Source: Oikopleura dioica
Lineage: Eukaryota > Animalia > Chordata
Length of the DNA: 64,000 bases
Direction of reading: 5' to 3'
NCBI GenBank assembly: GCA_907165135.1
Contig: OU015570.1
Location: 1,612,001 to 1,676,000 of the forward strand
Within the stretch, counting starts at the first letter, position 1; the number at the start of each line of letters is the position of its first letter. Position numbers and translations under genes: made by a program. The notes beneath the pieces were generated by a model, which saw only the letters and a list, made by a program, of their open reading frames with translations, was not told where the DNA came from and did not search any database. Positions 1 through 19,665 of the stretch are shown piece after piece.

Positions 1-584
1 CTTGACGACTCTTTTCTTGTTTTTGATTCTCTTCTGTGGCTTTTTCTCAGTGGTTCACTCATGTTTCTGATTTGGATCATCCGGTTTTGGTTCTAGCTCG
101 GCTCTAGAATAAGCTTATTATTTTGGGTGTAGATCGTCAAATTTATCAGTTGCGTGATGGAAGCGACTAACAAGCCGATTCAACAAGAAAAAAATGCAAC
201 TAATCAGGAGAACGATAAAAAAAAGGCTGAGGAAGCTGAGAAAGCTTCCAAAAAATTTGTCATGGCCGCCAATCACCTCAAGATGAAAGTTTTGCCACCG
301 CCGACAAGATTAGAATACGACGATGTTTTAAATGGATCAGAGTCTAATCCTCAAGTAATAACGATCCAAATGGACTACGGTTCGCTCCGTATTTATGTGA
401 AGGAAGCACTTTCCCTGTTTTTGTTCCATATTTCAACAAGGGACATCTCAAAATCGATTCAATTCGACAAAAAAGGAACGCTTTGAATCTCATAAAACAT
501 ACCTTTTGATAAGTTTTGATGGCTCTTAGCAGCGCTCAGGCCATCTCGATTAGAGTATCATTCCAAAATACCGATATAGACCTC

Positions 585-655
585 GGCGAGTTGGTGCAGT
601 GGTAGCACTCCCCGTCCGGACGTGGGCAACCTAGGTTCGATTCCTAGACTTGTCT
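585..655 (+). tRNA. tRNA-like sequence (pseudo-tRNA or SINE head) with aberrant anticodon arm
   Basis: Acceptor stem GGCGAGT/ACTTGTC; D stem GTGC/GCAC; T stem CTAGG/CCTAG with TTCGATT loop; A box TGGTGCAGTGG; B box GGTTCGATTCC; TTTT at 659-662. The anticodon stem is mismatched and has no canonical U33. Confidence 0.6.
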
Positions 656-673
656 GAATTTTCAGCTTGAGCG

Positions 674-1354
674 ATGTTAAAAACCATCAGTTTAATGTCG
701 TTTTCTTCTAACAAGCATTTTCATTGGTACTGTCCGGGTCGATCTTGTCGTAACCATCATTCACTGAATATTAATTTAGCAGTTGTTTTTTTATTTAAAG
801 CGCATGAAAAGGCAGGGCCTATATTCGGGCTACGTGTTCGGCTAAAAATCGAGGCTGTTGCAAAAGATTGGTCATTTTTTTATCCTGTCATGATCCGACG
901 CAAGATGCATTTTGGCATGCAAAAAATTTTACTATTGAGGAAGTTAAAGGAACTGTTTAAAGAAATAATGATCAAAGATAAGCTACAAACCAATAATTTG
1001 AACTCTATTGAACATAAAAAGGCACTCATGGGTCGAGAAAAAGAGTCCCTTGGAACTTTCGCAACATGTCTAAAGAACAGAAGCTTTTGGCGAAAAAAAT
1101 TGATGGAAATGGCGAAGGAAATAGATGGATGTGTACAAGAATTTACGAGAATGAAAGAAAGTTACGATCTATGGATATCTTTGACCAAGCAACACGACGC
1201 AATAAGGCCACATTTTAAACAACTACGTGCAGAGCTGCAAAAAGCGAACGGATGCATTGTAATTGGACCTGATGATGTTAAGCTTTCAAATTCGAAATCG
1301 CAAAAATTACTTGCGAATAAACTGTCGGAAAGGATGATTAAATACTCACCTTGA
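674..1354 (+). CDS. hypothetical protein, probably transposon-associated
   Basis: 226-codon ORF just upstream of the MULE transposase; no recognisable motif. Confidence 0.25.
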   Translation: MLKTISLMSFSSNKHFHWYCPGRSCRNHHSLNINLAVVFLFKAHEKAGPIFGLRVRLKIEAVAKDWSFFYPVMIRRKMHFGMQKILLLRKLKELFKEIMIKDKLQTNNLNSIEHKKALMGREKESLGTFATCLKNRSFWRKKLMEMAKEIDGCVQEFTRMKESYDLWISLTKQHDAIRPHFKQLRAELQKANGCIVIGPDDVKLSNSKSQKLLANKLSERMIKYSP

Positions 1355-1523
1355 TTCATCAACCACTAATCTTCGTACAGCTGAAGGTTATTCCAAGTAA
1401 AACAGCTCTATCATCTAGCGCGTAGTCTTCTTTGATTTCAGTGATTCTTCTTATAGCGCACATGTGGATTCGTTTTCCTAAATGTAGTTTATAATCATTC
1501 AAAAAAAGAAATATCGTAAAGGC

Positions 1524-2396
1524 ATGGACCAGGAAGACGCCGACCCATTTATTGTTGCCGACTTTATTGGCGGCGAAAAATACTATTGTACTGGGCAAGG
1601 ATACGAGCATGAGTGCTTCTCAAAATTTAGAGTCTACGCAACAACAAATGATTGGGCAAATGTCGAAATTGCGCCAAAGTTGGGTTTTGATGGAAACTAT
1701 AAAATCGGTAAAGAGGCGAAAAAAGAAGTTAATGGCGGAAAATCGTGGCAAGTCATTATCATCTGCCAAGCTGGACGATTTTTTTTATCCCAAACGAAGA
1801 ATTTTGCGAGCATTCGAATTGTTTGTCTGCTACCATCGAAAAAATCGGAGGACTACGAGCTCTTGTTATCTGGGATTCTATGGAAAACTAAAGGCCTGAA
1901 AAATTTGCGAGCGATATCATTAGACTACGAGACTGGAATACGCTGTGCTCTTGCAAAGTGCTTTGGGGAAGCTGTAAAGCATCTTTATTGCAGCTTTCAT
2001 CAAGCTCAAGGAAAGTTTTAAATATTATTACCTTTGATCGATAACCAGGAACATTGACTTTCCACTTCTTCTCTCCATCGTTAAGCATAAACGACTCGAA
2101 TCCTTGAAATTAATTATTAAAACTTGAAAGCGATCCAAAGAAACGCTTGCTCAAAAGAGTACAAACTTGGTGACGTTTGGGATAAGCCAAAGGCGAAAAC
2201 ATTTCGCGCACTTTGTGCATCTATCCCGTACATCCCTTTGTATTTAGAAGTTGTCAACAAAATGTTTGTTGCTGCAATGGAGGAGGAAGTTATCGTGCTC
2301 GAAAGAGATGATCCAAAATGGCGCGATCTATTCAATTACATTTTGGGCACATACGTTCTACACAGTTCGACTTTCTCCCCTTTAGGAATGGATTGA
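1524..2396 (+). mobile_element. MULE/Mutator-type DDE transposase, N-terminal part (exons 1524-2010 and 2131-~2388)
   Basis: MULE-domain motifs: 'VCLLPSKKSEDY', 'ISLDYETGIRCAL', 'CSFHQAQ|AIQRN' (CxxH), 'LFNYILGTYV'. Confidence 0.8.
2011..2130 (+). other. non-canonical GA...AG intron in MULE transposase
   Basis: Joining G2010 to C2131 gives GCG and restores the consensus-like 'FHQAQAIQRN' in frame; donor gaaag, acceptor ttgaaag. Confidence 0.6.
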
Positions 2397-2438
2397 AATT
2401 ACCTCGGGAATGGGATGGATATGGGAGTGGGAGTTTAC

Positions 2439-2598
2439 CTAAGCATTGAGATTTGTTGGGATTGTTTCGATCGCCAAAGTGTCGCTGCTTTCGGCACTTG
2501 GATGGAGAAGCAGATCGGCTTCGTCGAGATCCGCGGTTAGATCCTCGGGAGTCACTTCGAGATCTTCTTTGTCGATCAGGGGATCGTTTAAGAGGCCC
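2439..2598 (-). pseudogene. TRA2: captured transformer-2-like exon (RS region up to RRM start)
   Basis: 'RSRSASPSKCRKQRHFGDRNNPNKSQCLG' resembles the Tra2 motif 'RRHxGNRxNPxPxxCLG'; bounded by AG acceptor and GT donor; RRM absent. Confidence 0.7.
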
Positions 2599-2642
2599 CT
2601 GATACATCATTGTTTAATCTGCTCGTAAAACCCTTAGTGTAC

Positions 2643-2798
2643 CTTAGAACGGGACAGGCGGCGTGCCGGGTTCTTTCATCGCCAGAGCCATTTGGCAATA
2701 AATTGTACCAGAAAACTGCCGAGCCCTTGATCGATCGAATGTGGAGACCGAGCTCGGACTGTTCCTCCGTCTTGTTCGACAGTCGTCAAATATGAAAG
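2643..2798 (-). pseudogene. P4HA: captured prolyl 4-hydroxylase alpha exon (catalytic C-terminal region), frameshifted
   Basis: 'LSYLTTVEQDGGTV / ELGLHIRSIKGSAVFWYNLLPNGSGDERTRHAACPVLR' matches the P4HA motif 'KGxAVFWYNL...GD..TRHAACPVL'; small deletion shifts frame; flanked by 44-nt and 55-nt GT-AG introns. Confidence 0.85.
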
Positions 2799-2853
2799 CT
2801 AAATTTCAGTTAGTCATTGTTGTTTTCAATCAAGAAAAACAACGGTTTCGCAC

Positions 2854-4271
2854 ATTCTCGCCTTCAATTAAGCTCGTGTCAAGGGTCGACTTCTGCGCCT
2901 TGAAATCAGCAGCGGCTTGCTCCATCTTAATCAACTCGTGGCGGATGATCTGTTTCCATCATTGTCCAAGTGCTGGAGTTTTTCCTCCAAATGAGCGATA
3001 GTTCGGCTCAATTCAACCTTGTCAGCAGCGAGTCCTTCATTAAGCGCGGCAAACTTAGCGAGTTGTTCGCGAGAGCCTGCTTCTTCCGTTCTGAGATGGT
3101 TGAGTTTGAGCTCGGTCTCGTTAAGAGCACATTCGGCTCGTTGAAGAGCTTCGCTTGTTTCATGTCGCTCCTGGTCAGCAACGTCCCGTTCGAGCTCTGA
3201 TTTCTTGAGTTGCTCTCGGATGGCAATGAGCTCTTCTTTTAGAGACGAGCCTCGTTGTTCCAGAAGCTCTATATTTCGCTGAGAGCGCTTGTCATCCTCA
3301 TCCCTTCGTTTCAGCAGCGCCTGCAGTTCTTCTCGATCCTCCTCGGCCGATTCTTTCTGTGAAGAAAGCTCAGCGATCTTGCTTCGGAGTTTTTCAATGT
3401 CGACTTGGGCACCCTCGAGTTGAGCTTGGAGATTGTTGCGCGTTCGGTTGAGTCCGTCTTTCTCAGCCTGGGCGGTTTCAGCAGAGGCAAGCTTTCTGGT
3501 GATCTCGCGCTTGGCATCGTTGTTTTCAGTGATAGTCTCGTCGAGTTTGCTCTTTGTCTTGGCAATTTCACGCTCCAAGTTTTTGCAGACTTCCAGCAAC
3601 AGCGTCGTAAGTTGTCATCGCGAAGGTAGGGCTGACGGCTCTTCCTGGTGATCTGAGTCGGCGAGATCGTCGGCTAGGCGACGTGGATCTGGTTGGCGAT
3701 CGTGCGCCATCTCCTCGGAGTGATTCCGCTTCGGGAATGGCAACCGACAACTCAGTGTCAGCAATAACGCAGTTAGCAATGTCTCGAAGTGCTTGTTCAA
3801 GCTGGGCTTTTTGCTCTTGGAGATCTTCGAAGCCAGCAGGGTTGATTTCAGACATGTTGAGCGCGGAGAGATCAGCCTTGGCAGTAGAGTTTTCTCGCTC
3901 TGATCGGAGAGAATCTCGAGTAGATTCAAGCTCTCCCTGCATCGTAGCGATTGTACTCTTCAATGCGGCGCGTTCCTTCTCAAAATCGTCCTGGAGTTCG
4001 ATCAGTTCGGAAACCTTTTCGCGAAGTTGCTGTTCCACCTGACTCTTCTCGTCGGACATTCGATCGAGTGATTGTCGTGGCTCTGCAGTGCGCAACTTTG
4101 CGTTGAGATTCAAGCAAGCAGCGTGCATTTGACGCTTTGAGCGCGTGATGTCATCTCGTAAAGTCGAAAGATCCTTGTCGGTTTCATTCCTCATCTCGTT
4201 GTAGTTTCGCTTGAGCATTCGGAAAGACTTCCACAAGCTAGCAAGTTTGTCTTCGTCCGCCATAACGATAC
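2854..4271 (-). pseudogene. CROCC: captured rootletin (CROCC)-like coiled-coil fragment with internal deletion and frameshifts
   Basis: 'KLASLWKSFRMLKRNYNEMRNETDKDL', 'SPTFAMTTYDAV' and 'LRTEEAGSREQLAKFAALNEGLAADKVELSRTIAHLEE' parallel rootletin. Frame breaks near 3580 (about 30-45 residues missing) and near 2960. Both ends are truncated. Confidence 0.8.
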
Positions 4272-4454
4272 CTGAAGAGTTATCAGTGTTAGGAGCAAAT
4301 AGACAACTGTGATTAATAATCCTCAACGTGTCAAAAAGAAAGAAAAAAGAAAGCGATACCAAAAAACACGCATTTCTCTAAAATTCCAGAAAAAACGCGC
4401 ACCCAGAGGCAAACTTACATTCGGGTTGGGCTTTTTGAGGGTCGGGCTGATCTT

Positions 4455-4605
4455 GAGTTTCTCCGCTAGAATTTTGTCGTATTCTTCTCTGATCTGGTCT
4501 TCTCGCTGGCGCAGGAGCGTTTCGCACATGGTCGCCACCTAAAACAGTCATGAGGGTCACTAGTCAATTTGTGTTCGAAAAATGTATTTCTTGGCGTAAA
4601 GAGCC
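4455..4605 (-). pseudogene. AKIRIN: captured akirin C-terminal fragment
   Basis: 'LRQ|VATMCETLLRQREDQIREEYDKILAEKL' matches akirin 'LRQVGxICERLLKEREEKIREEYxxIL'; split by a 52-nt GA...AG intron (4539-4590); terminal 'AEQYDAFVKF' missing. Confidence 0.75.
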
Positions 4606-4942
4606 TTACGTTGCTTATGGTTAGACGAATGGTCGTGTCTGGTTGATACTTTCTGCCACTTGCTGAAAACGAAATAAGGGTATGAATTTGAAACACGCAG
4701 AGGCTGGCACTGTGCCCAGACAGTCAGAGTTCGCCCGCGGCGGTTTCTCCTTGGCCAATCGAGTTTTCAGTTACCTGGGGACTCGAGCGGAGGGAGCCGG
4801 CGAAACTGCGATTCGGACATACTTTCAGACAGACTAAAAACAAAAGCGGTTAGTCATCACTTTCAGGGTCTTTCCGCTTTACCTTTGAAGATCTACATTT
4901 GGCGCGTTATTCTTTTGGCAGAAGTTCCATTCTTTAGTAGAT

Positions 4943-6367
4943 TTGCAGGTCTTTTGCGAGTACTTCGCTGGCTCTTCGTCTTCTATAGGTCGTACAGTGC
5001 CTGAAATATTATTTCAATCCAAAAAAGTTCACTCCGAAAACTCAAGACGGGCCTCCCTTGGAGAATCCTCGCTTACAAACAATGCCGTTGAGTGTATAAA
5101 TGGGGAACTTAGCAAAAACGGGCTAGCAAGAGCGCCAAACATGCGCGAGATGATGACTATTATTGCTAATACGAAGCATAAAAACTACCTAAACGAACTC
5201 GCTATTGCAGAAGGTGTTGTTCCCTGTCCCGAAGAAGATACTAAAGAGTCAATGAAAATTTTTATTCGGTCGCATGCGGTCCGAAAAGTACTCAAAATGG
5301 TGAAAAAACGAAGCTCTGGATACTTTCAAGAGGAAACAGAGGGCGAACTGCAAAAACTCAAGCGACAAATCATTGAGAGCGCCATTGACATTCGTTACTC
5401 TAAGGAGAAAGCTAGCGAGGTGCTCAAAGATCAGCTTTCCTTCAATATTTTTATGCGCGAAATCCCAGAAGACAGGTTTAAAGAAACTCTTGTGAATGAG
5501 ATAAGGAGGCCAACAACGCTCATGTTAAATACAAATTTGGAAAATTTGGAACTTATGGCCGAGCCGAGTATAATTGCACCGCCACCTAATAAAATTCAAA
5601 GGACTGAAGACTTACCTTCGTTTTTGATGAATGAAGAACTTGTTGATCTGGTGCCTGTTCCAACAACGACCGCGTCCTCGACCGAATCCGAAAGCTCTTC
5701 TGCTGCTCTATCAGCGGCGAATGCACCATCGGTAAAGAAATCATCGACCTCGTCCTCGACCGAATCCGAAAGCTCTTCTGCTGGTCTATCAGCGGCGAAT
5801 GCACCATCGGTAAAGAAATCATCGACCTCATCCTCGACCGAATCCAAAAGCACTTCTTTTGCTCTACGAGCGCCAAATGCTCCAAAGCCGTTGTCAGTTC
5901 CGCAGAAGGCAAAGCAGCTCCTAGAAAAAAGATTTTCAATGAAAATGAAGACAAGAAACTGGAAGAAAATTGGAAAAAAGACTTTAAAAAACGGCGAATT
6001 CATGACACTTGGTACTAACGATGAGAATGTACCGACAATTTTGGTCGAATCTTTCATTTATATTCTCAACAAAACACTAGTTGACGAGCATAAAATGGCT
6101 ATTGTACTTCCTCATTGGCTCTTCAATATGTTGGAGATGAAACCTAATCATATTCCTGAGATGATGGCAAGAGATGGCATTAACAATTTCAATGCAAAGA
6201 ACTATCTTGACATCGCAATTTATCTGCCATGTTCTCATCACATATTGAACGACACATTCGCGCATATCTCGATCTCGGCTAGAGTTATAACTATTTACGA
6301 CTTTGACAAAAACGAGTTGGATAGATCAGAAGATTACAGGAAACGTCCGATAAATTATTTTCGATAA
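4943..6367 (+). mobile_element. MULE transposase C-terminal part (catalytic Glu region) fused to Ser-rich linker and degenerate Ulp1-like domain
   Basis: 'LTNNAVECINGEL...APNMREMM' is the MULE TNNxxE motif. 'IYLPC...ISISARVITIYD' and downstream 'AIPAGSKASDCSIY' (~6480-6520) resemble a C48 protease with the catalytic His apparently lost. Confidence 0.65.
5672..5885 (+). repeat. 78-bp coding tandem repeat, about 2.7 copies
   Basis: TCCTCGACCGAATCC recurs at 5675, 5753 and 5831; unit encodes SSTESESSSAALSAANAPSVKKSSTS. Confidence 0.95.
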
Positions 6368-7912
6368 TTATAAATAAGCTCAACAAAATTTTTATGGACA
6401 TTTAAGAAATATTTCCGAAATAATCAATGATAGACTTGTTCAAGAATTCTTGGGCGAAAGATTTTCTTTGGAGATAATGGCCATTCCAGCGGGCTCAAAA
6501 GCTTCCGATTGTTCGATTTACAATTCTATCGCTATGGCTTATAAACTGAGATATCCAGAACAAAATCTTACTTCAAATCATTTCTCACCTTCAAAAAATA
6601 TCCGGCTCAAGTTCGCCCAATGCATACTTGAAGAAAAAATAGATTTTTAAAACTATTATTCTGACATTTTTGATAACAAATAAATATACATTCAACAAGA
6701 AAGAAGTACCTGTTAGTTGAAAATTTCAGCACAGCTACATGTTGATTAATCGCTTCTCTCGCAGCCTTTCTACGAGCCAAATGTTCTGCCTTCATTTCTG
6801 CGATCACTTTTGCAACGATTTTGATTTGTCCCTTGACTTTAATGGTCAGAAATGGGTGCTTCTGTGGTCATTTTTACCTGTGTAGAGAGAGAGAAGCTTC
6901 ATTCGCTGGTAATAAATAAGTTGGAGGCTTTGAAAGGACGAGTTTCAGTTTGTCGATTATGCTCTCTGGTATTTTTGGCGGTTTTCTCGATGGGTCAGAT
7001 TTGGCAACGCATAGTGCGCTTTGCAGTGAGAGTAGCTAGAATTGAGTGAATCGAGAGAAGATCAATTTTGACAACTCACGGGTATGAAAAAGGCAGATCC
7101 ATTGGACATTGATGAACAGCAGATTGGTCCGTCGAAGCTTACTGAATTGGGAGCTCTGTCGAGACAGAGAGCGGACCCAATGATCCTGGCTCCTCTTTCG
7201 TTCGCAGTTGTGACGAGAACTTCAATCGTGGAAGGACAAGAATCCGGAATGCGCCCGCTTTCGCGCATTTCATCCACCCAATTGAGCGAGATACAGTTCA
7301 AGCCGCTACAATCACCGTTAAATACAGTCAGAAAAACTCTATCAGCTCATACGTTTGATTAAAGTGTCTCGAATTGCATGACGGATCCGAGAGGACATGA
7401 ATTTGCTCATCGAATGAGTCGGAAACAGCCAATTCGACTTTCTTCACTACAATCGCTTCTTCTTCGATAAACAAAAAGCCTTCTTGGTCTTTTAAACGAT
7501 TCATTTATCTTGAAAAATAAAAATGGTGACCGAAAAACGGTCCCATCATCGATTTTTAGGAAAAAATGATAAAAAGAATAATAAAGTTAATTTCAGATAA
7601 GTAAAAACAGGAAAATTCCTCCAATAAAATAAATTTAATCTTCTTTCTTCTTTTTTCTCACATGAATCCAAGTTTACGACGAAAAAAAACGAAAAAAACA
7701 AATTTGTGTGCGCTGAATCATCGCTTCATTGAGTCACGATTATTCTCAAAAAGCGCGCGAAGTTTAAATTTTGGCAGGTAAAACTTCTGTTAAAAATTTT
7801 GAAATTAAAAAATATTTTCGAAATCAAAAAAATGTGCTCGAGGGGGGGTCAAGCAGAATTATATTTCGGGTAATCAAGTCGATTTTTGTTTTTGAAAATA
7901 TTCTCATCTCAA

Positions 7913-8042
7913 ATTCCTTACATGGTACAAAAATCCTTACATGGTACATTTCCTTACATGGTACAAATTGATTTTTGTACCATGTAAGGATTTTGTACCA
8001 TGTAAGGAAATGTACCATGTAAGGATCTGTACCATGTAAGGA
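7913..8042. repeat. foldback array of a 15-bp core (3 forward + 4 reverse copies)
   Basis: TCCTTACATGGTACA at 7915, 7934, 7951; TGTACCATGTAAGGA at 7976, 7994, 8011, 8028. Confidence 0.95.
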
Positions 8043-8402
8043 CACCCCTAATTATGTATTGTATCCTTTAAAAGTCATTCTCAAATATGTGTTGCTGAGA
8101 GGAGGATCCTTTGAAGAAGAATGGTCGATAAGTCATGCTAAAACACCTGCTCAACTCACAAATGATTGTGCCCTTCATTGCTGTTTTGGATTATTTCATT
8201 TGATTATTGGCTGTTCAGACTACAGCAAGAAACTCAAAGAAAAAACAATGCAGCTTCGAGGAACACTTCTATCATGTATTCATGATGGAAAGCTTAATTG
8301 CGGATCGACGGATGACTGAACATTCTTTTATTTTATTTATCAGAATTAGAAATAAATTGAAAAAAAACAGAATAAAGTTTTGAGGATTTTTCGACCTTTT
8401 AT

Positions 8403-8875
8403 TATAGGTCTAACTATTCTGCTCGTTTCATAAAAAGAACACATAATTCCGCCAAAGGCAATTGCGCGTCTGACGCCCGCCCGCCTTACCACTGCTCTTG
8501 GGCGCCGCCTACATTTTTTGAAATGGCCTTCGGCGCCGCGAGATGAGCTAGTTCATTTTCAACTGTCTTTCCTGAATCTGAACTACGCCTTCTGAACTTC
8601 AATCACTACAACTCGTTGTGAACTGCTACAACTCGTTGTGAACCTCTTCTTTTCGATCCGAGCTGTTCTTACTGACCATCACCTGTTCCAGCTGTATACG
8701 AAGCAAAAGTAAAGCCTATATAAACCCTCTTACACTCTCATTCTCAACCACTCAGAGATACTTTTGTGGACAATAAACCAAAACTAACTTTTAACCTTTT
8801 TTAACCTTCATTCAACTCTAGAGTTGCCTGAAGTTGCGTTGTGTTATTTCTTTGCAGAATAGTCTAACCTATACA
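8403..8875 (+). repeat. 5' LTR of element 1
   Basis: TATAGG...CCTATACA; contains TATATAAA (~8717) and AATAAA (~8772); matches 15365-15835. Confidence 0.95.
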
Positions 8876-8878
8876 AAT

Positions 8879-8885
8879 TGGTGAC
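8879..8885 (+). promoter_or_regulatory. primer-binding site (short, tRNA-Trp-like)
   Basis: TGGTGAC 3 nt after the LTR; complementary to the 3' end of eukaryotic tRNA-Trp (...GUCACCA) over 7 nt only. Confidence 0.55.
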
Positions 8886-9008
8886 TGAATCAAACGGAAC
8901 GCCCAAAGAATAAGAGAGCTAACGATCGAAGAGAGCTGCAGTGAAAAGTGCTTAACGATCGAAGAGAGCTGCCGTAAGAAAACACCTATTGTAAGTACCA
9001 AAATATTA

Positions 9009-10388
9009 ATGGAAGGGGAATATTTCAAAAACGCTTCTGATCTTACTCGATATGAGCTATTGCAAATCTATGACTCTTGTCCGGGAAAGTGTTACCCAAC
9101 AAAAATCCCAATCACGGACAAACGATCCATTGTTTGCAATATCTTACTCGTTGATCCGGGTTTTCTCGAAAGAGACCGAAAGTTTCATTTTAAACCGACA
9201 AATGACGGTAAATTTGTCGAATTTTTGCCCGACTTCACTGGGGAAGTCGAGCAGAAATTTGCTCACCCACGGCATAAAATGAACCTCGAGCAAATTGTCG
9301 CAACTCAAGAAGCTGATTCCTTGAGCAAGTTAATGGCCTCTTTGGATGTCGAGAGTGATACTGAGGGTCTACCAGAGCTTGACGTAACCGATGAAAACTC
9401 ATCTTCCGACTCTGATATGTCAGCAAACGCTACCATGAGACCGAGAAATTCTCGACCAAAGCGATCTACGCCACCAAAGCCCGAGATCAAGAAAGAAAAA
9501 CCTGAAAAGAAGCCATCTAAGAACCGAGACAAACAACCCACTCGAAATAGAAGGGAGGAACGCGAACCCGAATATCAGCCAAAACGGAAGTTTGAGTCCG
9601 GCAAAGCACGAATAAAAACGCCGAAATATGATACATGCCTTCCGATAAGTGCCTGGATTCGAAACATGGAGATTTATGGCCGGGTCACCTCGCTTAATGA
9701 TGAAGAGCTCATCACATGCGCCCTCAGTGCTCTGCTAGCCGAAGAGCAAGGAAGCCACATCATCGCCTCTCTCACAGACACTGAACTTCAGGAATGGGAT
9801 GCATTCAAAGCAAAACTTGAAGACGTGCTTGGCTTCTCCCGAGATCACTGGAAACACCTTTATGAGAACTACCAACGTGGATCTGACTCTTTTGGTGTCG
9901 CCATGGCCAAGTTAACGAGCTATTACAGGCAAGGGTATAACATCAAAGATCTCCGAAAACACGACGAAGAACTCTTAATCGAGAAATTTTGCTCTGCCCA
10001 AGACGATCGACTTCGAGAACTTCTATTGCGAGACAAAGCTAGCCTTGATGTTAGCTCGATTGTTAAACGAGCAAACGAGCTTGAAAGATCCATTCCGAAA
10101 CGCGAGATCAATTTCGCCGCTGTCACGAAACCTGAAAATGACCCGATCAACAAACAAATCCAGCAACTCATGGAAGAGTTCAAAAAGTTCAAAGCGGACC
10201 ATGAGACTCACCGGAAAAAGCAAAGTGTAAAGAAAAAATCAAAGATTGATCTTGACAAAGCCCAAGGATACTGCTTGAAGTACACGAACACTGGTCAATG
10301 CAAGTATGGAAGTTCCTGCAAGTACCAACATGCTCAGCAGCAAGAAATCCCTGCACAGGTCAAAGAATACGCAAGGTCACTCTTATGA
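9009..10388 (+). CDS. gag: Gag with C-terminal CCCH zinc finger
   Basis: Intact 459 aa; capsid-like 'PKYD...WIRNME...Q..DSF' region; 'CLKYTNTGQCKYGSSCKYQH' (C-x8-C-x5-C-x3-H). Confidence 0.9.
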   Translation: MEGEYFKNASDLTRYELLQIYDSCPGKCYPTKIPITDKRSIVCNILLVDPGFLERDRKFHFKPTNDGKFVEFLPDFTGEVEQKFAHPRHKMNLEQIVATQEADSLSKLMASLDVESDTEGLPELDVTDENSSSDSDMSANATMRPRNSRPKRSTPPKPEIKKEKPEKKPSKNRDKQPTRNRREEREPEYQPKRKFESGKARIKTPKYDTCLPISAWIRNMEIYGRVTSLNDEELITCALSALLAEEQGSHIIASLTDTELQEWDAFKAKLEDVLGFSRDHWKHLYENYQRGSDSFGVAMAKLTSYYRQGYNIKDLRKHDEELLIEKFCSAQDDRLRELLLRDKASLDVSSIVKRANELERSIPKREINFAAVTKPENDPINKQIQQLMEEFKKFKADHETHRKKQSVKKKSKIDLDKAQGYCLKYTNTGQCKYGSSCKYQHAQQQEIPAQVKEYARSLL

Positions 10389-13300
10389 CTAAGTTATTCT
10401 GAAACTGTTCTTGCCATTCCGAATATGTTCTACGCTCCCTCAAACCTGAAATTTATCAACGTCAATATCAATGGCTACAACTACGTCGCGCTCCTCGACA
10501 CCGGTGCTTTAAAGACCTGTGTCAATTCAAGTCTTCCTTTTGTCAACAACACCAAACCATCGAAAGTGGAAATAATTTGTGCAAACAACCAATTTATCCG
10601 ACCATCAACACTCGCCGAACCAATCAAAATGACAGTCCAAACAATCGGCGACGGAACATTCTCTCTGATCACAAATCCACTTGTTGTCGACTCACTTTGT
10701 GTTCCTGTCCTTATTGGCTGCGACCTCCTCAAAGATGTTGCTTTCCCTGATAAAAAATTAATTGTTTGGAAAAACAAACAAGTCCGAACAATAAGACCCG
10801 ATCAAAACTCCAAATATTGCAATGTCAATGCAATTGTCGAGATCAAAGATTCTAAAACTGAAAGGGAATCCCTAGAATCATTCCAAAGATTACGAAGTCA
10901 AAAGGCCGAAATAATGAATTTCAAACCGGAAATTGGCTCATTCGGCGACACGACTTCGGAGCAAGAAGGAAAACTGATTGATCTCGTTGGCAAATATAAA
11001 CTTGCCTTCTCAATGGGTGAAGATGACCTTGGAAAACTTCATAATTTCCGGTTCACCCTACCTATGCTTGATGAATCTCAGACAACACACCAACCTCCTC
11101 GCCCAATACCGATTCACATGAGAGATCAGGTTCGCAAAGAGATTGAGCGATGGAAAAGTCTGGACATCATCAGAGAGACATCGTCTGGTTTCAATATACC
11201 GCTGATTATTCTAAAGAAACACGATGGCTCTATAAGGATTTCTCTTGATGCAAGATCCTTAAACAAACTCATTCAACAAGATCGGTTCCCGCTGCCTCAC
11301 TTGTCTGTGGTATTGACAGATATCGGAACTCGTCTTTCAAATGGGAACTCATGCTTCATCAGTCAAATTGATTGCCACCGAGGGTATTGGCAAATACAAA
11401 CTGCCGCTGATGATTCCCACAAGCTTGCTTTCTCTTTCAACAACAAACACTACGCCGCCCAACGTATGCTCTATGGTGTGTCAACAGCCCCGAGTGCATT
11501 CTCACGAATCATGCAGAAACTACTCAACCATCCGAGTATCCTCCTGTACTTGGACGATATAATCTGCATTGATAACTCCTTCGAAAAACATCTTGAGACC
11601 CTGGAGTTTATTTTCAAAACATGCGTTGATAATGGCCTACTTCTTTCACCGAAAAAGTGTTACCTGTGTCGAACTGAGGCCGACTTCCTTGGCTACTCTA
11701 TTAGCAAAGATGGAGTTCGACCAACAGAAAAACACCTCGAAACTGTCAAAAACTTGAAGGCTCCACAGTCAAAGAGCGAAGTAAAACGCCTTTTAGGAGT
11801 TTTCAACTATAACATCAAGTTCATTCGAGACGGAAGTGCCATTCTGCAACCCCTTTACGACCTCACATCAAAGAATACCGAATTTTTATGGGCTGACAAA
11901 CATGAGCGTGCCTTCCAAACAATTAAGAATGAATTGTTGAAAAAGCCATCACTGTCACACTTTCAACTTCGAAAACCCTTGATTTTGGTCACCGACAGTA
12001 GTGGAAAGAAAGTTGGCGGAATCCTCTATCAAAGAATCGGAGAAAATCTAAACATTCTTGGCTACTTCTCCAAAGCCCTGAAAGGACCTGACTTAAAACG
12101 ATCAATGAGGATCAAAGAGCTGTTTGCACTGGCATTCAGCATTTCCCATTTCGAGTATTTCCTTCTCAATACACACTTTACATGCGTGGTTGATCACAAG
12201 TCACTATGTTATTTGTTCAAAGAGCAACGAGACTACAAAAACAACGATATCAAACTCACAAACATCCACAATTATTTGCTCAAATTCAATTTTACGATCC
12301 TCCACGAACCCGGCACAAGTCCGATAATGTGTACTGCTGATTATCTCTCACGTCTAGAGGCTTCTTCCAGCGATGACCTTGAGAGTGACTCAATGAAATT
12401 CGAGGATATTCCCGAAACTGTGTTCGCCTTCCACACAAGAATGACTGCTAACGAAGAGAGCGTTTTCTCATTTGGCGAACAAAACTTTACAGCGAAAGAA
12501 TTTTCCAAACTTCAAATGGATTGTCCAAAGTCAAGAAACCTTATTGAAAAATGTGGACGCAATCCAAAATCACCATTTGAAACTAAGGACGGGTTACTTT
12601 ACAAAGATAATCGTCTTGTCCTTCCTGAAGATCTCAGCAATGAATTTATCTCCTTTCTTCATTGCTACACGTGCCATGCTGGTAGCAAACAATTAAACAT
12701 GATGTTAAAACGGTTTTTCATCCACGACGTGCAAACAAAAACCCGTGAGATAACAACATCATGTGCCACTTGTATCAATACGGAGCCCTTGAGCAAACTC
12801 CGTCCTTCAATGATCCAAAATCGGTATTTCGAGTCAATACCATTTACAAAAACTTTCTTTGATCTGATGGATTTTGGTCAAAAGGACAACCAAGGGAAAC
12901 GATACCTTCTCACTTGTTCCGACTCACTGACTGGCTATATTGATGGAGAGCCTCTTGGAACAAAAAGCGATCCTGCTGTTGCGAAAAACATTCTTACTTT
13001 GATCCTTCGGCATGGAATCAACAACGACTGCTTCTCAGATAACGGATCTGAATTTGGCCCGCTTGTTGCCGAAGTATTTCGCAAATTTGAGATCCGACAC
13101 TCGCGAACAACTGCTTACCGAAGTCAAAGCAATGGTGCTCTAGAAAGACTTCACCGCGAGGTCAACACCAAACTTAAGCTATTGAATGCTGATCACCGTA
13201 ACTGGTCAACTGCCTGGCCAATGGTTAGATATTATATCAACAATTTACCAAAATCGACGCTAGATGGCAGAAGTGCTAATGAGTGCTATTATGGACGACA

Positions 13301-13814
13301 ATTCCACGTCCCTTTCCAAACAAATCCTGTTGACGGCGCATCAAAGGAAAAATGGTTGACTGGACTCAACAAGTACTTTGATAAATTGCACCCGTCTATT
13401 CTTGCTCATCAAGTTTCTCGATACCGGAAACTGCTTGCACGAGACAAGAATAATGCTCCTACCCTTGAAATTGGATCCAAATGTCTCATCTGGAAACCAG
13501 CTTTTAGAAAGCTAAATAGAGTCTGGTTCGGCCCGTTCACTGTTATCAAACGAATCAGCAAGGACTCTTACATTGTGAAAGATGTCGAAAGTCGAAGGGA
13601 GTACCGTCGACATATCAACTTGATCCGACCATTGAAGTTCAAAAATGACCCTGAGGAACTTCCTGTTACCGTTCCACCAGTTTCTCCAGATCCTGATACC
13701 GTTGCTAAACTTGATGCTGAAGAAGTTCATGACATGAAAGAACTTAAAGAAGTTTGCCCTGGAGAACCTCACATTAATACTTGGGCAAATAGATTGCGGC
13801 CAAGACACCAATAA
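10389..13814 (+). CDS. pol: Pol (protease, RT, RNase H, integrase), in frame with gag
   Basis: LLDTGA protease; YLDD RT; VTDSS RNase H; H-x4-H...C-x2-C and DDE integrase; GPF module; open from 10389. Confidence 0.97.
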   Translation, partial: LSYSETVLAIPNMFYAPSNLKFINVNINGYNYVALLDTGALKTCVNSSLPFVNNTKPSKVEIICANNQFIRPSTLAEPIKMTVQTIGDGTFSLITNPLVVDSLCVPVLIGCDLLKDVAFPDKKLIVWKNKQVRTIRPDQNSKYCNVNAIVEIKDSKTERESLESFQRLRSQKAEIMNFKPEIGSFGDTTSEQEGKLIDLVGKYKLAFSMGEDDLGKLHNFRFTLPMLDESQTTHQPPRPIPIHMRDQVRKEIERWKSLDIIRETSSGFNIPLIILKKHDGSIRISLDARSLNKLIQQDRFPLPHLSVVLTDIGTRLSNGNSCFISQIDCHRGYWQIQTAADDSHKLAFSFNNKHYAAQRMLYGVSTAPSAFSRIMQKLLNHPSILLYLDDIICIDNSFEKHLETLEFIFKTCVDNGLLLSPKKCYLCRTEADFLGYSISKDGVRPTEKHLETVKNLKAPQSKSEVKRLLGVFNYNIKFIRDGSAILQPLYDLTSKNTEFLWADKHERAFQTIKNELLKKPSLSHFQLRKPLILVTDSSGKKVGGILYQRIGENLNILGYFSKALKGPDLKRSMRIKELFALAFSISHFEYFLLNTHFTCVVDHKSLCYLFKEQRDYKNNDIKLTNIHNYLLKFNFTILHEPGTSPIMCTADYLSRLEASSSDDLESDSMKFEDIPETVFAFHTRMTANEESVFSFGEQNFTAKEFSKLQMDCPKSRNLIEKCGRNPKSPFETKDGLLYKDNRLVLPEDLSNEFISFLHCYTCHAGSKQLNMMLKRFFIHDVQTKTREITTSCATCINTEPLSKLRPSMIQNRYFESIPFTKTFFDLMDFGQKDNQGKRYLLTCSDSLTGYIDGEPLGTKSDPAVAKNILTLILRHGINNDCFSDNGSEFGPLVAEVFRKFEIRHSRTTAYRSQSNGALERLHREVNTKLKLLNADHRNWSTAWPMVRYYINNLPKSTLDGRSANECYYGRQFHVPFQTNPVDGASKEKWLTGLNKYFDKLHPSILAHQVSRYRKLLARDKNNAPTLEIGSKCLIWKPAFRKLNRVWFGPFTVIKRISKDSYIVKDVESRREYRRHINLIRPLKFKNDPEELPVTVPPVSPDPDTVAKLDAEEVHDMKELKEVCPGEPHINTWANRLRPRHQ

Positions 13815-14230
13815 AATGTGAAGGGGGAGGGAAGGCCCTTACAAGCCCCGTGTGCCAATCCATATTTGTGGAACAATATGGCTGTAAACAAAGTCCACTT
13901 GGATATCCGACTAAAGAGCAGCTTGGCGACCGCTCATGGAGAAGGGACCTCCTTACGAATCAAACCTCGCCTCGTAACCAAAAAGTAGCTTCCGTTCCCT
14001 GCTAATAGTTAGGTGGCCATATCCCTCACGCATTTTTGATTTTTGTGACGCTGAAAGTCTACCGCGCGCAACTCAGACTGATGCCTCTCCAACATTCGAA
14101 AATGTAGAAATATGAAGACGACAAGATGCAACCGTTCTTGTTTACAGAAATCTTCGACGATAGAAGAATGATTGTTACCTGTGACGTTCATGTGCTAAGA
14201 TGAACAATCAATGTCATACCGAGATGACAA

Positions 14231-15325
14231 ATGATACAAGAGCTACGCAGTGATACCCATAAAAGTGCCGCTTCAATATTTATACAGCACTTATCTATCC
14301 CTTTTTTCACGAAAATTTTGGCCAAAATTTGAGATTTTGGTTGCCAAGATTTTCACTTCATTTTATTCCAATCGCGTGTCGACGAGAGACACAAGCTTAA
14401 AAGAGATGTCGAACACTACCTTGAACCAAATCCTTGTCTGGATGCAACCGTACGACTCTAAGAAGCGCTTCCAACAATTCTGTCTGACATATATGCTTGG
14501 ACACACTTATCTTTCCGACTGCGAAAACCTTCTGTTTACTTCCTCAAACTGGTCAACATCACTACCAATTCCAGTGATGACCTTAACAACCCCAACACAA
14601 GAGGTGAACATCTGTTCTCTTTTGGAATTTACCGGAAAAATCTCCTCTACAGACATTTAAGTCAAGAAACTTATGATGACAATCATATCTTGACTTCTTT
14701 CGATAAGTTCAACAGATGCAGAAACCTTTGGAAGAAATTCCGAGATATCACGATTCCCGAATTACAACTTATCGCAAATAAAGCAAAGAGACTAAACGCT
14801 GATTATCTGAGAGAGCTTGGAATTAATGCTCAAATACCTTGTAACCTGCCGCCTGGAACAAACAATGAGCAAACAACTCGTTTCCATCCTACAAACAATA
14901 ATGAACAAAATCCTGAGACGTCTGTGAATTATGAGTTAGTCCCAATCAGTGATGATGAACAGCAAAAAGATTTTCCGAAAGTTACCGATGATGTCACTGG
15001 ACAAACTTTTGGGGATATGTTTCATCCTCCACCACCTGATAACCAAATTCCAACTGCTTCGAATGACACTGGATCAACTATGGATGATATTCTTCGAAAT
15101 GTTTCTGCAAGCTGCCTTGATTGGCTCAAACCCTACATTGAGATGTCAAATGACCGCTCCGCTGACAAATCAAATGAAAACGCCACATCACAGTCAACAA
15201 CCAACTCGTCTCCAAGCCAAATAATGAATGATGCTGATCAACTGATCAATGGAAATCTGTGGAATAAATACTCTGAAAGCTCGCCAGAATCATGGCGTGG
15301 ATACACATCATCCGACTCAGACTAA
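14231..15325 (+). pseudogene. orphan accessory ORF3 of element 1 with two in-frame stops
   Basis: Manual translation from ATG 14231 stays in one frame to 15325 with only TGA 14330 and TAA 14459; no signal peptide or TM segment seen. Confidence 0.5.
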
Positions 15326-15349
15326 AATATTGATTTAAGTCTGAAAAAT

Positions 15350-15362
15350 AAAGAGGGAGGAA
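15350..15362 (+). promoter_or_regulatory. polypurine tract of element 1
   Basis: AAAGAGGGAGGAA, 2 nt upstream of the 3' LTR. Confidence 0.85.
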
Positions 15363-15364
15363 TT

Positions 15365-15835
15365 TATAGGTCTTACTATTCTGCTCGTTTCATAAAAAGA
15401 ACACATAATTCCGCCAAAGGCAATTGCGCGTCTGACGCCCGCCCGCCTTACCACTGCTCTTGGGCGCCGCCTACATTTTTGAAATGGCCTTCGGCGCCGC
15501 GAGATGAGCTAGTTCATTTTCAACTGTCTTTCCTGAATCTGAACTACGCCTTCTGAACTTCAATCACTACAACTCGTTGTGAACTGCTTCAACTCGTTGT
15601 GAACCTCTTCTTTTCGATCCGAGCTGTTCTTACTGACCATCACCTGTTCCAGCTGTATACGAAGCAAAAGTAAAGCCTATATAAACCCTCTTACACTCTC
15701 ATTCTCAACCACTCAGAGATACTTTTGTGGACAATAAACCAAAACTAACTTTTAACCTTTTTAACCTTCATTCAACTCTAGAGTTGCCTGAAGTTGCGTT
15801 GTGTTATTTCTTTGCAGAATAGTCTAACCTATACA
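15365..15835 (+). repeat. 3' LTR of element 1
   Basis: About 99% identical to 8403-8875. Confidence 0.95.
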
Positions 15836-16902
15836 TTATTGTAAAAATGAGAATCGGTCATTTCTTGAAGAAGGCCTTTTCTTGTAAATTTTCAGATTTG
15901 CAATAAATGGACATTTACAAAAAATGGTCGAATTTTGTTTTAAGAAGAAAAGTCACTTTTACAAGAAAAGTCCGTGTCCCAATCCCGGCAAGTCGTAGCT
16001 CGGCCGGAAATCCCGGCGAGTCGTAGCTCTCCCTTCAGAGCAATAAAGTTTCGGCAGGTTTTTTCATTCTCATCCTGATGTGCGCTGCTATGCGCGTCCA
16101 ATGAATGTCCTTATCAATTTGTCACCTTCAAAATCTCGTGTTATTTTCCGCTCGCATGTTCGGAAGAGTTTTTTCTCGCGCTTCATTCTTCAAAAATGCA
16201 GGAACTCGAGGATGATTATGCGCCGATAATTAAAACGGAATCGACGGAAAACGCTAAAAACAATAAACTTTTTCCGGATTTTATAATCCTTGAAAACAAG
16301 TATGTTTTGAAAAGAACCGCAACCTTTTCGAAGTCTTTGATCTTTAATTGTACAGCGAAACAGCCTGATGGAATGATTGCCGATGAAGATATGAGATCAT
16401 ACCATCACCACTTGTCTCCAGACAAGAGAGTCACATAAGAAAAAGGAAAAATGGTGACGTTGAGCGGGAAGCAATCGAGTAGAAGATCAAGCTCCTCCTT
16501 GATTCCGATCATCTCTACGATCCTTTTCAGTACATTATCAAAAAGCCGAAGAAACTGCCTTGTGTCCATACATACGTCCATTCTGATAGTACCAAAGCGA
16601 AGGTCACTAATTTTGACAAGACAATTCTTCACGAAAATATATCAAGGTAATAATTTTGACTGTAAAATATAATTAATTTTTTAGCTTTCTGCACACGGCT
16701 TGTGGTTGAAAAATTTGGAGAAAATGCTTACATCGCTCATTTTCCATCTGACACGGAGTTTACGAACATGTGCTACCTCAAACGAACTTCTGAACAAGAG
16801 CGAGAAGAAATTGTCGATCTTTTCACCTATGATTTTCAACCAGAAGGAATGGATAATAATTGTTATTTATAAAGAATAAATGTTAGTTAAATAATCAAGA
16901 TG

Positions 16903-18201: not shown

Positions 18202-19665
18202 TATCTACACGATGTCATTTATCAATCAAGATGAATGTCTATCCAAAAAAGATCTCTCTTGCTTTGGCAGACAGATTATGTTTCCTGACAAAGATTCCAA
18301 ATTGATTATTCAGAAAAATAATTTATTCTCTACAACAAGAATTTTATCGAAGAGCTGGGCGTCTTTCAAGATGCAATTCTTGTTGGGAAGTTTATCTAAA
18401 CGCGAAGCTGCATAAAGAACCCCCTTACCCGAAGTGTACACCTTTTGTCGATTATACCTTGCTCTCAAGATAATCTTCTGAGAATCCTCGATTAAAGAAA
18501 GTCGAAGAAAAAAGTTGAAGCTCCCCCAAATAGTCCTTTCTCGATAAAAAAATTTAAATCGTAGTATTTGCTAAAATAAAGGTTAGGGTTAGGGGGCACC
18601 TGCGAAAATGACGGAACAACCTCACCCGAGGGTAACCCTTACTAACCCTTGACTAGACCCCGGCATCTTAGGACCGAGGGGCAGAGCCCCGAAGTAAGGG
18701 ACAATTTGATTTTATAATTTTCTCTTGATAAAATAAGCGCTCAATTCGAGATTATTCAATTCTCTGCGTAAATTTTGTCGGCAAGAATATAAATATCTCC
18801 AGCAATTACTGAGTCTATATAATATAGACTATATTTCAAGAGTAGAATTTATCCGTACTACGCTTTTTTGGCCTTTCAAAAACTTGGGTCCTCCGATCGT
18901 GTCGGACCCTTATTTAGAGACTGAATCTTTAATTCCGTTAGCGTGGGTAAGATTGGCTCCTGTTTCGACGTGCACGCGCGCGCCTGTTGATTTTTTGACA
19001 CTTTCAAGGCTCATCGCAAAGTCATTTTAATTTCAGACTTATATAACAAACGTAGTATGAAACGAATTCTGAACAGCACATCCGCGAAGTCAAGGACCGC
19101 AAGCGCGAGCGGGCCAGCAAGATCGAAGCCAAGGTCGTCCAAGTGAACACGGGCAATCTCGAGCTGCTGTCGGAAATCAAGGCCAACCGCTCTGTTATCT
19201 ACGCCATGAATGACAATCAACGCGTTCAGAATAATGTTCTACCGTCGCCTCAGCAAATCGCTGCCCGTCCGCAAGTTAATAGTAGTGCTGCCACGCCAGT
19301 TGATTATGAAACGATTATCGGAAATGGTGCCCCGAAGCTAAGCCTCGGCCTTCGATAACAATGAGACCGTATCAAAACCAGATGAGGGAAATGGTAGGTC
19401 AAAATAAAGACGTTCATTCACTACGAATTTAAATAGGAAATCTGGAAAAACAAGAAATCTGCTAAGTGTGATTGCCCGAAACTGAGGGTCAAAAAAAAAT
19501 TACTTGTTGCTTGGAAGTATAAATCTGTTCGACACTCGAGGTAAGCATAACTAGGTTGTTTTAAAAAAGTCATTTTCAAACCCAATTTTCGGAAAATTTA
19601 CCTTAGTGACTCCCTTATTCTTTTCCTCAAAAGAGAGCCAAAACTTGAAACTTCCTTTTGGACTT

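Follow-up and report, generated by a model that had tools for sequence, protein, structure and literature searches.

Host-gene fragments in a predicted transposase intron of a probably complete Mutator-type transposon in the chordate Oikopleura dioica

This analysis concerns a 64,000-nucleotide stretch of Oikopleura dioica contig OU015570.1 (assembly GCA_907165135.1), called the window below, and a Mutator-type element at its left edge which carries fragments of host genes antisense to its own transposase gene. The window corresponds to C3:1612001-1676000; coordinates are window positions unless one of the contigs C1–C5 is given, strands are stated where applicable, and the genome searched comprised 64,281,565 bases in 19 contigs. 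The element measures 9,224 bp and runs from C3:1610825 to window position 8048, so the window contains the part at 1-8048 (plus strand), and the left end, with its terminal inverted repeat (TIR) and target-site duplication (TSD), lies 1,175 bp before the first base of the window. An initial annotation of the locus had predicted TIRs and a 9-bp TSD beyond this left edge, and both were found there. Inverted-repeat comparison gave a TIR pair of 250 bp and 88% identity at -1189 to -941 and 7815-8059, with the right TIR occupying 7815-8048 (minus strand) of the element, while both termini start with GGGGT and the perfect 9-bp TSD TAATTATGT is present on either side (left copy at -1184 to -1176, right copy at 8049-8057). 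The 12-mer CCTTACATGGTA is present seven times in each TIR, in the right one four times in one orientation and three times in the other. Taking a TSD of ~9 bp (8-11) and long TIRs of ~100-500 bp as the marks of Mutator and Mutator-like elements (MULEs), the element agrees with this group both in the size of its TSD and in the length of its TIRs. Rfam gave sub-threshold microRNA-like matches at 7916-8041, which were rejected as they are merely palindromic sub-repeats of the TIR. The same TIR family bounds small non-autonomous elements with 9-bp TSDs on other chromosomes, such as a small member on C2 with the perfect 9-bp TSD CTTTTTCTA; these have no internal sequence in common with the 9,224-bp element, and inside they consist largely of nested repeats and of sequence specific to the family, with no clear host genes.

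Seven plus-strand transposase segments lie between the TIRs, all of them open and with 30-59% protein identity to diverged paralogs. Segments 1 (154-483, tblastn match to a C5 paralog at E 1.5e-20), 2 (808-957) and 3 (1121-1351) have approximate boundaries, the latter two placed by paralog homology. Segment 4 (1488-2018) holds the candidate MULE domain (Pfam PF10551) and the motif CSFH at 1989-2000, segment 5 (2121-2385) ends in phase 1 after ...FSPL, segment 6 (5028-6364) contains TNNAVE at 5075-5092, and segment 7 (6378-6647) matches paralog L057 at E 1e-12. Within segment 6, the stretch 5664-5884 consists of three tandem 78-bp copies, 82-90% identical, encoding a Ser-rich repeat.

Segments 5 and 6 are separated by intron 5 (2386-5027, plus strand, 2,642 bp), a GA..AG intron in phase 1 as modelled from the paralogs. 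In five paralogs segment 5 has the same ...SPx ending, after which comes the conserved donor G|GAA(A/T)G, and in four paralogs the next segment begins after AAAAG, in phase 1 and exactly 15 residues before TNNxxE. Introns of the GA-AG type occur often in O. dioica (PMC7072748). Only the 34 nt (2386-2419) and 41 nt (4987-5027) at the two ends of intron 5 look native, with cargo adding the 2,567 bp between them, and the intron was probably ~75 nt long originally. On this splice model the cassette of host-gene fragments fills a conserved intron and the predicted coding sequence is undivided, and with intron 5 removed the spacing from CSFH to TNNAVE is usual. The cassette had originally been described as lying inside a MULE gene, between its CxxH and TNNxxE halves; this position stands, but if it lies in an intron, as predicted, the coding sequence is not disrupted, and it is this intron that divides the predicted catalytic domain between the two motifs.

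The cassette itself (2420-4986) combines at least eight pieces of DNA in a mosaic; they go back to five genes at four host loci and all run antisense to the transposase, hence on the minus strand. For the four fragments named initially, the parent matches have E-values from 1e-23 to 0, far beyond chance. It begins with a tra2 piece (2420-2586, 95.2% identical to C5:8860480-8860314), comprising part of the RS1 exon and 20 nt of intron, and a P4HA piece (2595-2841, 93.3% including indels to C5:8859381-8859130), comprising the penultimate exon with flanking intron sequence and shifted in frame by a 5-bp deletion. These are followed by a frameshifted rootletin piece (2843-4341), made up of 1.5 kb of exon and 70 nt of upstream intron, of which 2843-3580 corresponds to C2:10483093-10483849 (95.8%) and 3579-4341 to C2:10483952-10484713 (97.8%), with an internal deletion of 104 bp at 3579/3580. 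A 114-bp linker (4342-4455) containing 59 bp of a dispersed repeat (4346-4404, at least eight other copies at 83-90%) leads to the akirin piece (4456-4925), which holds exons and introns in three stretches (4456-4654, 4653-4787 and 4779-4925) of C2:11496000-11496769 at about 96%, with internal deletions of 115 and 184 bp. The last piece is 75 bp of a C2H2 zinc-finger gene (4912-4986, 91% identical to C5:6079914-6079840). The P4HA parent has P4Ha_N and TPR_P4H domains above threshold, the tra2 parent has an RS-RRM-RS layout with Transformer-2 beta as its best solved-structure match, and the rootletin parent matches Pfam Rootletin at 37.5 bits (cut-off 36), the domain spreading over three exons of which one is above threshold; the remaining named gene we take to be akirin from its N- and C-terminal motifs. 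The parent loci all contain full genes.

The genome search thus bore out the four fragments first named here, each on the minus strand and each with one parent locus in the same genome. The accompanying description of four unrelated genes in 2.2 kb was right about their shared antisense orientation, but the cargo amounts to 2,567 bp, the zinc-finger gene is a fifth source, and P4HA and tra2 are tandem neighbours at one parent locus, with the 932 bp between them deleted in the cassette. This pair is the only one adjacent elsewhere, and apart from it a simple segmental duplication was ruled out.

At the level of substitutions, rootletin has diverged from its parent by 2.1-2.2%, akirin by 3.0-3.7%, tra2/P4HA by 4.8-4.9% and the zinc-finger piece, over 75 sites, by 9%. 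Introns have left P4HA sequence in the cassette, 20 nt from the start of a tra2 intron, 70 nt of a rootletin intron and an akirin intron in full, and these retained introns show, as had been proposed, that capture took place at the DNA level. The parental stretches missing from the cassette (104, 115, 184 and 932 bp) are coding or mixed sequence and not introns, and the junctions carry 8-bp and 1-bp filler, microhomologies of 2, 2 and 9 bp and an imperfect one of ~14 bp. We also considered that the cassette might be a chimeric assembly, or a set of retrocopies that arose when reverse transcription switched templates, given that a single assembly is involved and that the 1.5 kb of rootletin has no internal intron. 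Pieces which are 2-9% diverged from their parents and carry indels do not resemble a chimeric read join, and with divergence of this size the parents cannot have been joined chimerically during assembly. The parent rootletin stretch is likewise free of introns, there are no poly(A) tracts at the cassette junctions, and no intron-less junctions were seen exactly at parental splice sites; together with the true introns retained and a set of missing stretches that are not introns, which rule out capture at the RNA level, this leaves an artefact or a retrocopied origin exceedingly improbable.

Cargo is not confined to intron 5, as about 4.5 of the 9.2 kb of the element match other loci and include pieces of at least eight host genes. 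Outside intron 5 as well, pieces match single loci elsewhere. At the left, a piece at 4-100 (92% identical to C4:8372823-8372727) extends upstream of the window, where it is interrupted by a 470-bp piece matching C1:9562338-9562860 at 86%. Intron 1 contains a tRNA-gene-like piece (517-689, plus strand; tRNA at 585-655, Rfam tRNA 42.4 bits against a cut-off of 29), followed at 687-755 (minus strand) by 69 bp of an integrin-alpha-like gene (C2:8918078-8918147, 89%), the parental exon neighbouring this source giving Integrin_A_Ig_1 at 8e-5. For the tRNA-like sequence at 585-655 ARAGORN reports an odd anticodon, the anticodon loop is aberrant, and the surrounding 173 bp has five genomic matches of 82%. 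Intron 3 holds 74 bp of a trypsin-like serine protease gene (1371-1444, minus strand; C1:12192303-12192376, 88%), and intron 4 a 49-bp piece (2054-2102; C5:8870826-8870874, 86%) whose source is ~10 kb from the P4HA/tra2 parent locus. Finally, 754 bp of a Nup88-like gene (6725-7478, minus strand; C2:10649023-10649781, 94.5%) lie between the last exon and the right TIR.

None of this cargo falls within the seven exon segments; it is found in introns and in the subterminal regions on both sides. For 7/7 independent source loci with a readable gene strand the cargo runs antisense to the transposase (two-sided p ~0.02), the tRNA-like piece being the sole one in sense direction. Compared with their parents, the cassette pieces and the Nup88-like piece (3.2 kb) show nine indel events in total, as opposed to no broken frame in 3.1 kb of exon segments, which speaks for continued selection on the transposase gene after the capture. 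The cassette cargo, truncated, frameshifted and promoterless, appears to be non-coding.

Enlarged introns at the position of intron 5 are also found in three divergent paralogs in the genome and in one metagenome contig. The equivalent intron has a length of 2.4 kb in L061 and of 3.7 kb in L062, two of these paralogs, and in each it is packed with sequence from other host loci (84-99% identity); in both the longest cargo open reading frames are antisense, and the cargo genes differ completely between lineages. Nested in the cargo intron of L062 there is a miniature inverted-repeat transposable element (MITE) of ~495 bp (L062:6349-6844, C3:2849349-2849844) with TIRs of ~37 bp and more than 20 genomic copies. 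The metagenome contig (L066; ENA ERZ27250226, contig k141_717048, 6,878 bp) contains a related MULE gene, in which this intron measures 1.4 kb, and, near its 3' end, a kinesin motor fragment in antisense orientation, so the same architecture exists outside the O. dioica assembly examined. In L066 the transposase is followed by a Peptidase_C48 domain (24.6 bits against a cut-off of 20.7). No such Peptidase_C48 (Ulp1) domain was detected in exon segments 6 and 7 of the 9,224-bp element, which gave no Pfam match at E<=1, and BLASTP yielded no alignment of the element to the C48 exons of L066.

Movement of cargo can be followed in a young sister MULE family (L053/L054/L055, with near-identical copies at C4:7643010-7646249, C5:12173314-12176553 and C1:16974214-16977426), of which the C4 and C5 loci are 99.94% identical over 3.24 kb. 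Here three host loci are represented, at 92-97% identity, in the intron that follows the CxxH exon, and the cargo stretch is ~100% identical in four copies (two on C4 and one each on C5 and C1), from which it follows that such cargo travels with the elements. The C1 copy differs by a 1.8-kb block located exactly at a cargo junction, of which the 1,044 bp examined contain antisense pieces of a CFA20 and a TPR gene, with two source pieces lying 15-25 kb from the C5 copy of the family. The block may have been gained in the C1 copy or lost from the others.

The uniform antisense orientation in the element and its relatives, and the recurrence of cargo in the same intron in several lineages, could also be read as signs of function. 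Transcribed within the transposase pre-mRNA or from the TIRs, the cargo would then give rise to double-stranded RNA, or to small RNAs, targeting tra2, rootletin, akirin and P4HA, or would shield the element from silencing. This proposal is speculative, and the antisense bias is explained more simply by the removal of sense insertions which disturb splicing; with cargo genes that are wholly different between lineages and pieces that are decaying by frameshifts and deletions, we regard a functional module as very unlikely.

Taken on sequence grounds, the host of the cassette would be a complete Mutator-superfamily (MULE) transposon of the autonomous type and the cassette dead host-gene cargo, a reading to which we assign a probability of roughly 75%. 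Several observations weigh against it. At the DNA level a second copy of the element or of the cassette is absent from the whole genome, either with or without the cassette, so that cargo amplified or moved together with its element, as is characteristic of Pack-MULEs, is not seen for this single-copy element. The PF10551 match of segment 4 (E 1e-4, 23.1 bits, exons scanned singly) is below the gathering score of 27.6, although the same family also matches two of the three paralog exons scanned (E 2e-3), or 3/4 of the family exons counting segment 4. The C-terminal half of the transposase had no protein relatives in a collection of 5.8 billion, and the MULE exon only six short fragment relatives in a library of 1.84 billion. 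Furthermore, the splice model comes from comparison with the paralogs, the antisense count from few independent loci, and the trend in divergence from the centre of the cassette to its edges from few sites, with differences in exon and intron content as a confounder. The cargo-bearing paralogs that were examined in the genome, three in number, all lie on the same 2.9-Mb contig C3, the smallest of five large contigs. C3 is probably the Y-specific region, in which junk may build up whether or not there is transposition; this region has been described as repeat-rich (PMC8008620).

These last points bear on another explanation, in which the element is an immobile MULE relic on a non-recombining, repeat-rich and probably Y-specific contig, and the host pieces are ordinary filler from double-strand-break repair, inserted afterwards and unrelated to Mutator activity. 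Next to the single copy number and the shared location on C3, it would also explain that the left flank of the element is rich in host pieces. However, the host pieces in the left flank surround another MULE remnant, and on the right side of the element the next 12 kb consist, with one short exception, of ordinary repeats and not of host-gene pieces. Avoidance of exons and a uniform antisense orientation are expected only with a transposase gene under selection, and the sister family carries its intron cargo in ~100% identical copies on C1, C4 and C5. We therefore consider accumulation of junk after insertion an unlikely explanation.

As to the surroundings themselves, the left flank (C3:1605001-1610810) contains the MULE-like gene remnant at C3:1606109-1606393, with one in-frame TGA, and around it a mosaic of single-locus host pieces (e.g. 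C5:8024166-8025001 at 97%). A paralogous empty site for the right flank was looked for, and none was found. To the right of the element, positions 8403-15836 are occupied by a 7.4-kb multi-copy repeat, probably a retrotransposon, with near full-length copies at C5:1749614-1757097 (97%) and C3:2830616-2838101 (95%). Short and apparently MITE-like repeat families are found at ~16.9-18.2 kb, and two stretches within 18913-19418 match C5:11053777-11054472 at 93-95%, a locus ~18 kb from the C5 transposase paralog at C5:11072798-11073417.

If the element is indeed an autonomous MULE with host-gene cargo, the host pieces may have been copied in during break or gap repair, via template switching or end joining, and it is the microhomology and filler at the junctions which lead us to link the capture to repair. 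Acquisition may have taken place in more than one round, with divergence lowest in the middle of the cassette (rootletin 2.1%) and highest at its edges (tra2/P4HA 4.8%, zinc finger 9%). Cargo would persist only where it is harmless to the transposase, that is in introns, from which it would be removed by splicing, and in subterminal regions, and since it is antisense, its own splice and polyadenylation signals would go unread in the transposase transcript. A wider and tentative possibility is that the transposase introns of Oikopleura MULEs act as a renewable cargo bay. Repair would fill it with host DNA from around a resident copy, next to or at the cargo junctions already there, and the cargo would then move along with an element that is still autonomous. 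Hints in this direction are the sources of the C1 block 15-25 kb from the C5 copy, the intron-4 piece originating ~10 kb from P4HA/tra2, and the outward rise in divergence. Were this so, each element would preserve, layer upon layer, a record of its former locations, and antisense host-gene sequence would be spread around a very compact chordate genome. O. dioica has one of the smallest and fastest-evolving animal genomes, with introns that are normally tiny, and an autonomous DNA transposon of this kind offers a possible route by which host exons are reshuffled and dispersed. In the young sister family with its several copies, which differ by one cargo block, near-identical copies may also make the long-unresolved mechanism of capture approachable.

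Capture of gene fragments by Mutator elements is a textbook phenomenon in plants, and in our literature search no paper came up that connects Oikopleura with Pack-MULEs or reports gene capture by Mutator elements in this organism. Pack-MULEs are plant elements, non-autonomous and moved in trans (PMC6431247), and those of rice, maize and Arabidopsis (Jiang et al. 2004, 2011, summarised in PMC6431247) share with the Oikopleura element Mutator TIRs, a 9-bp TSD and an intron-bearing mosaic of unrelated host-gene fragments, truncated and mostly non-coding. The likeness to Pack-MULEs suggested initially thus holds for a mosaic of host genes between MULE TIRs, but not for the classical non-autonomous type, as the Oikopleura element keeps a seven-exon transposase gene. 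Pack-MULEs are mostly 1-2 kb in size. The Oikopleura element also differs in having most of its cargo in introns and antisense, an arrangement by which the transposase reading frame is spared, and in being a single copy in a chordate host with a 64-Mb genome. Transposase-encoding plant MULEs which carry a captured Ulp1 protease domain are known as KI-MULEs or Kaonashi, and they resemble the Oikopleura element in combining a transposase gene with acquired host sequence, with the relative L066 even having a Peptidase_C48 domain; the captured domain of the plant elements is expressed, however, whereas the Oikopleura element contains dead antisense intron fragments, with C48 undetected. Helitron and CACTA elements likewise form chimeras of several host-gene fragments at the DNA level inside a DNA transposon, but the Oikopleura element lacks the hallmarks of either and has instead TIRs, a 9-bp TSD and a predicted DDE/CxxH transposase.

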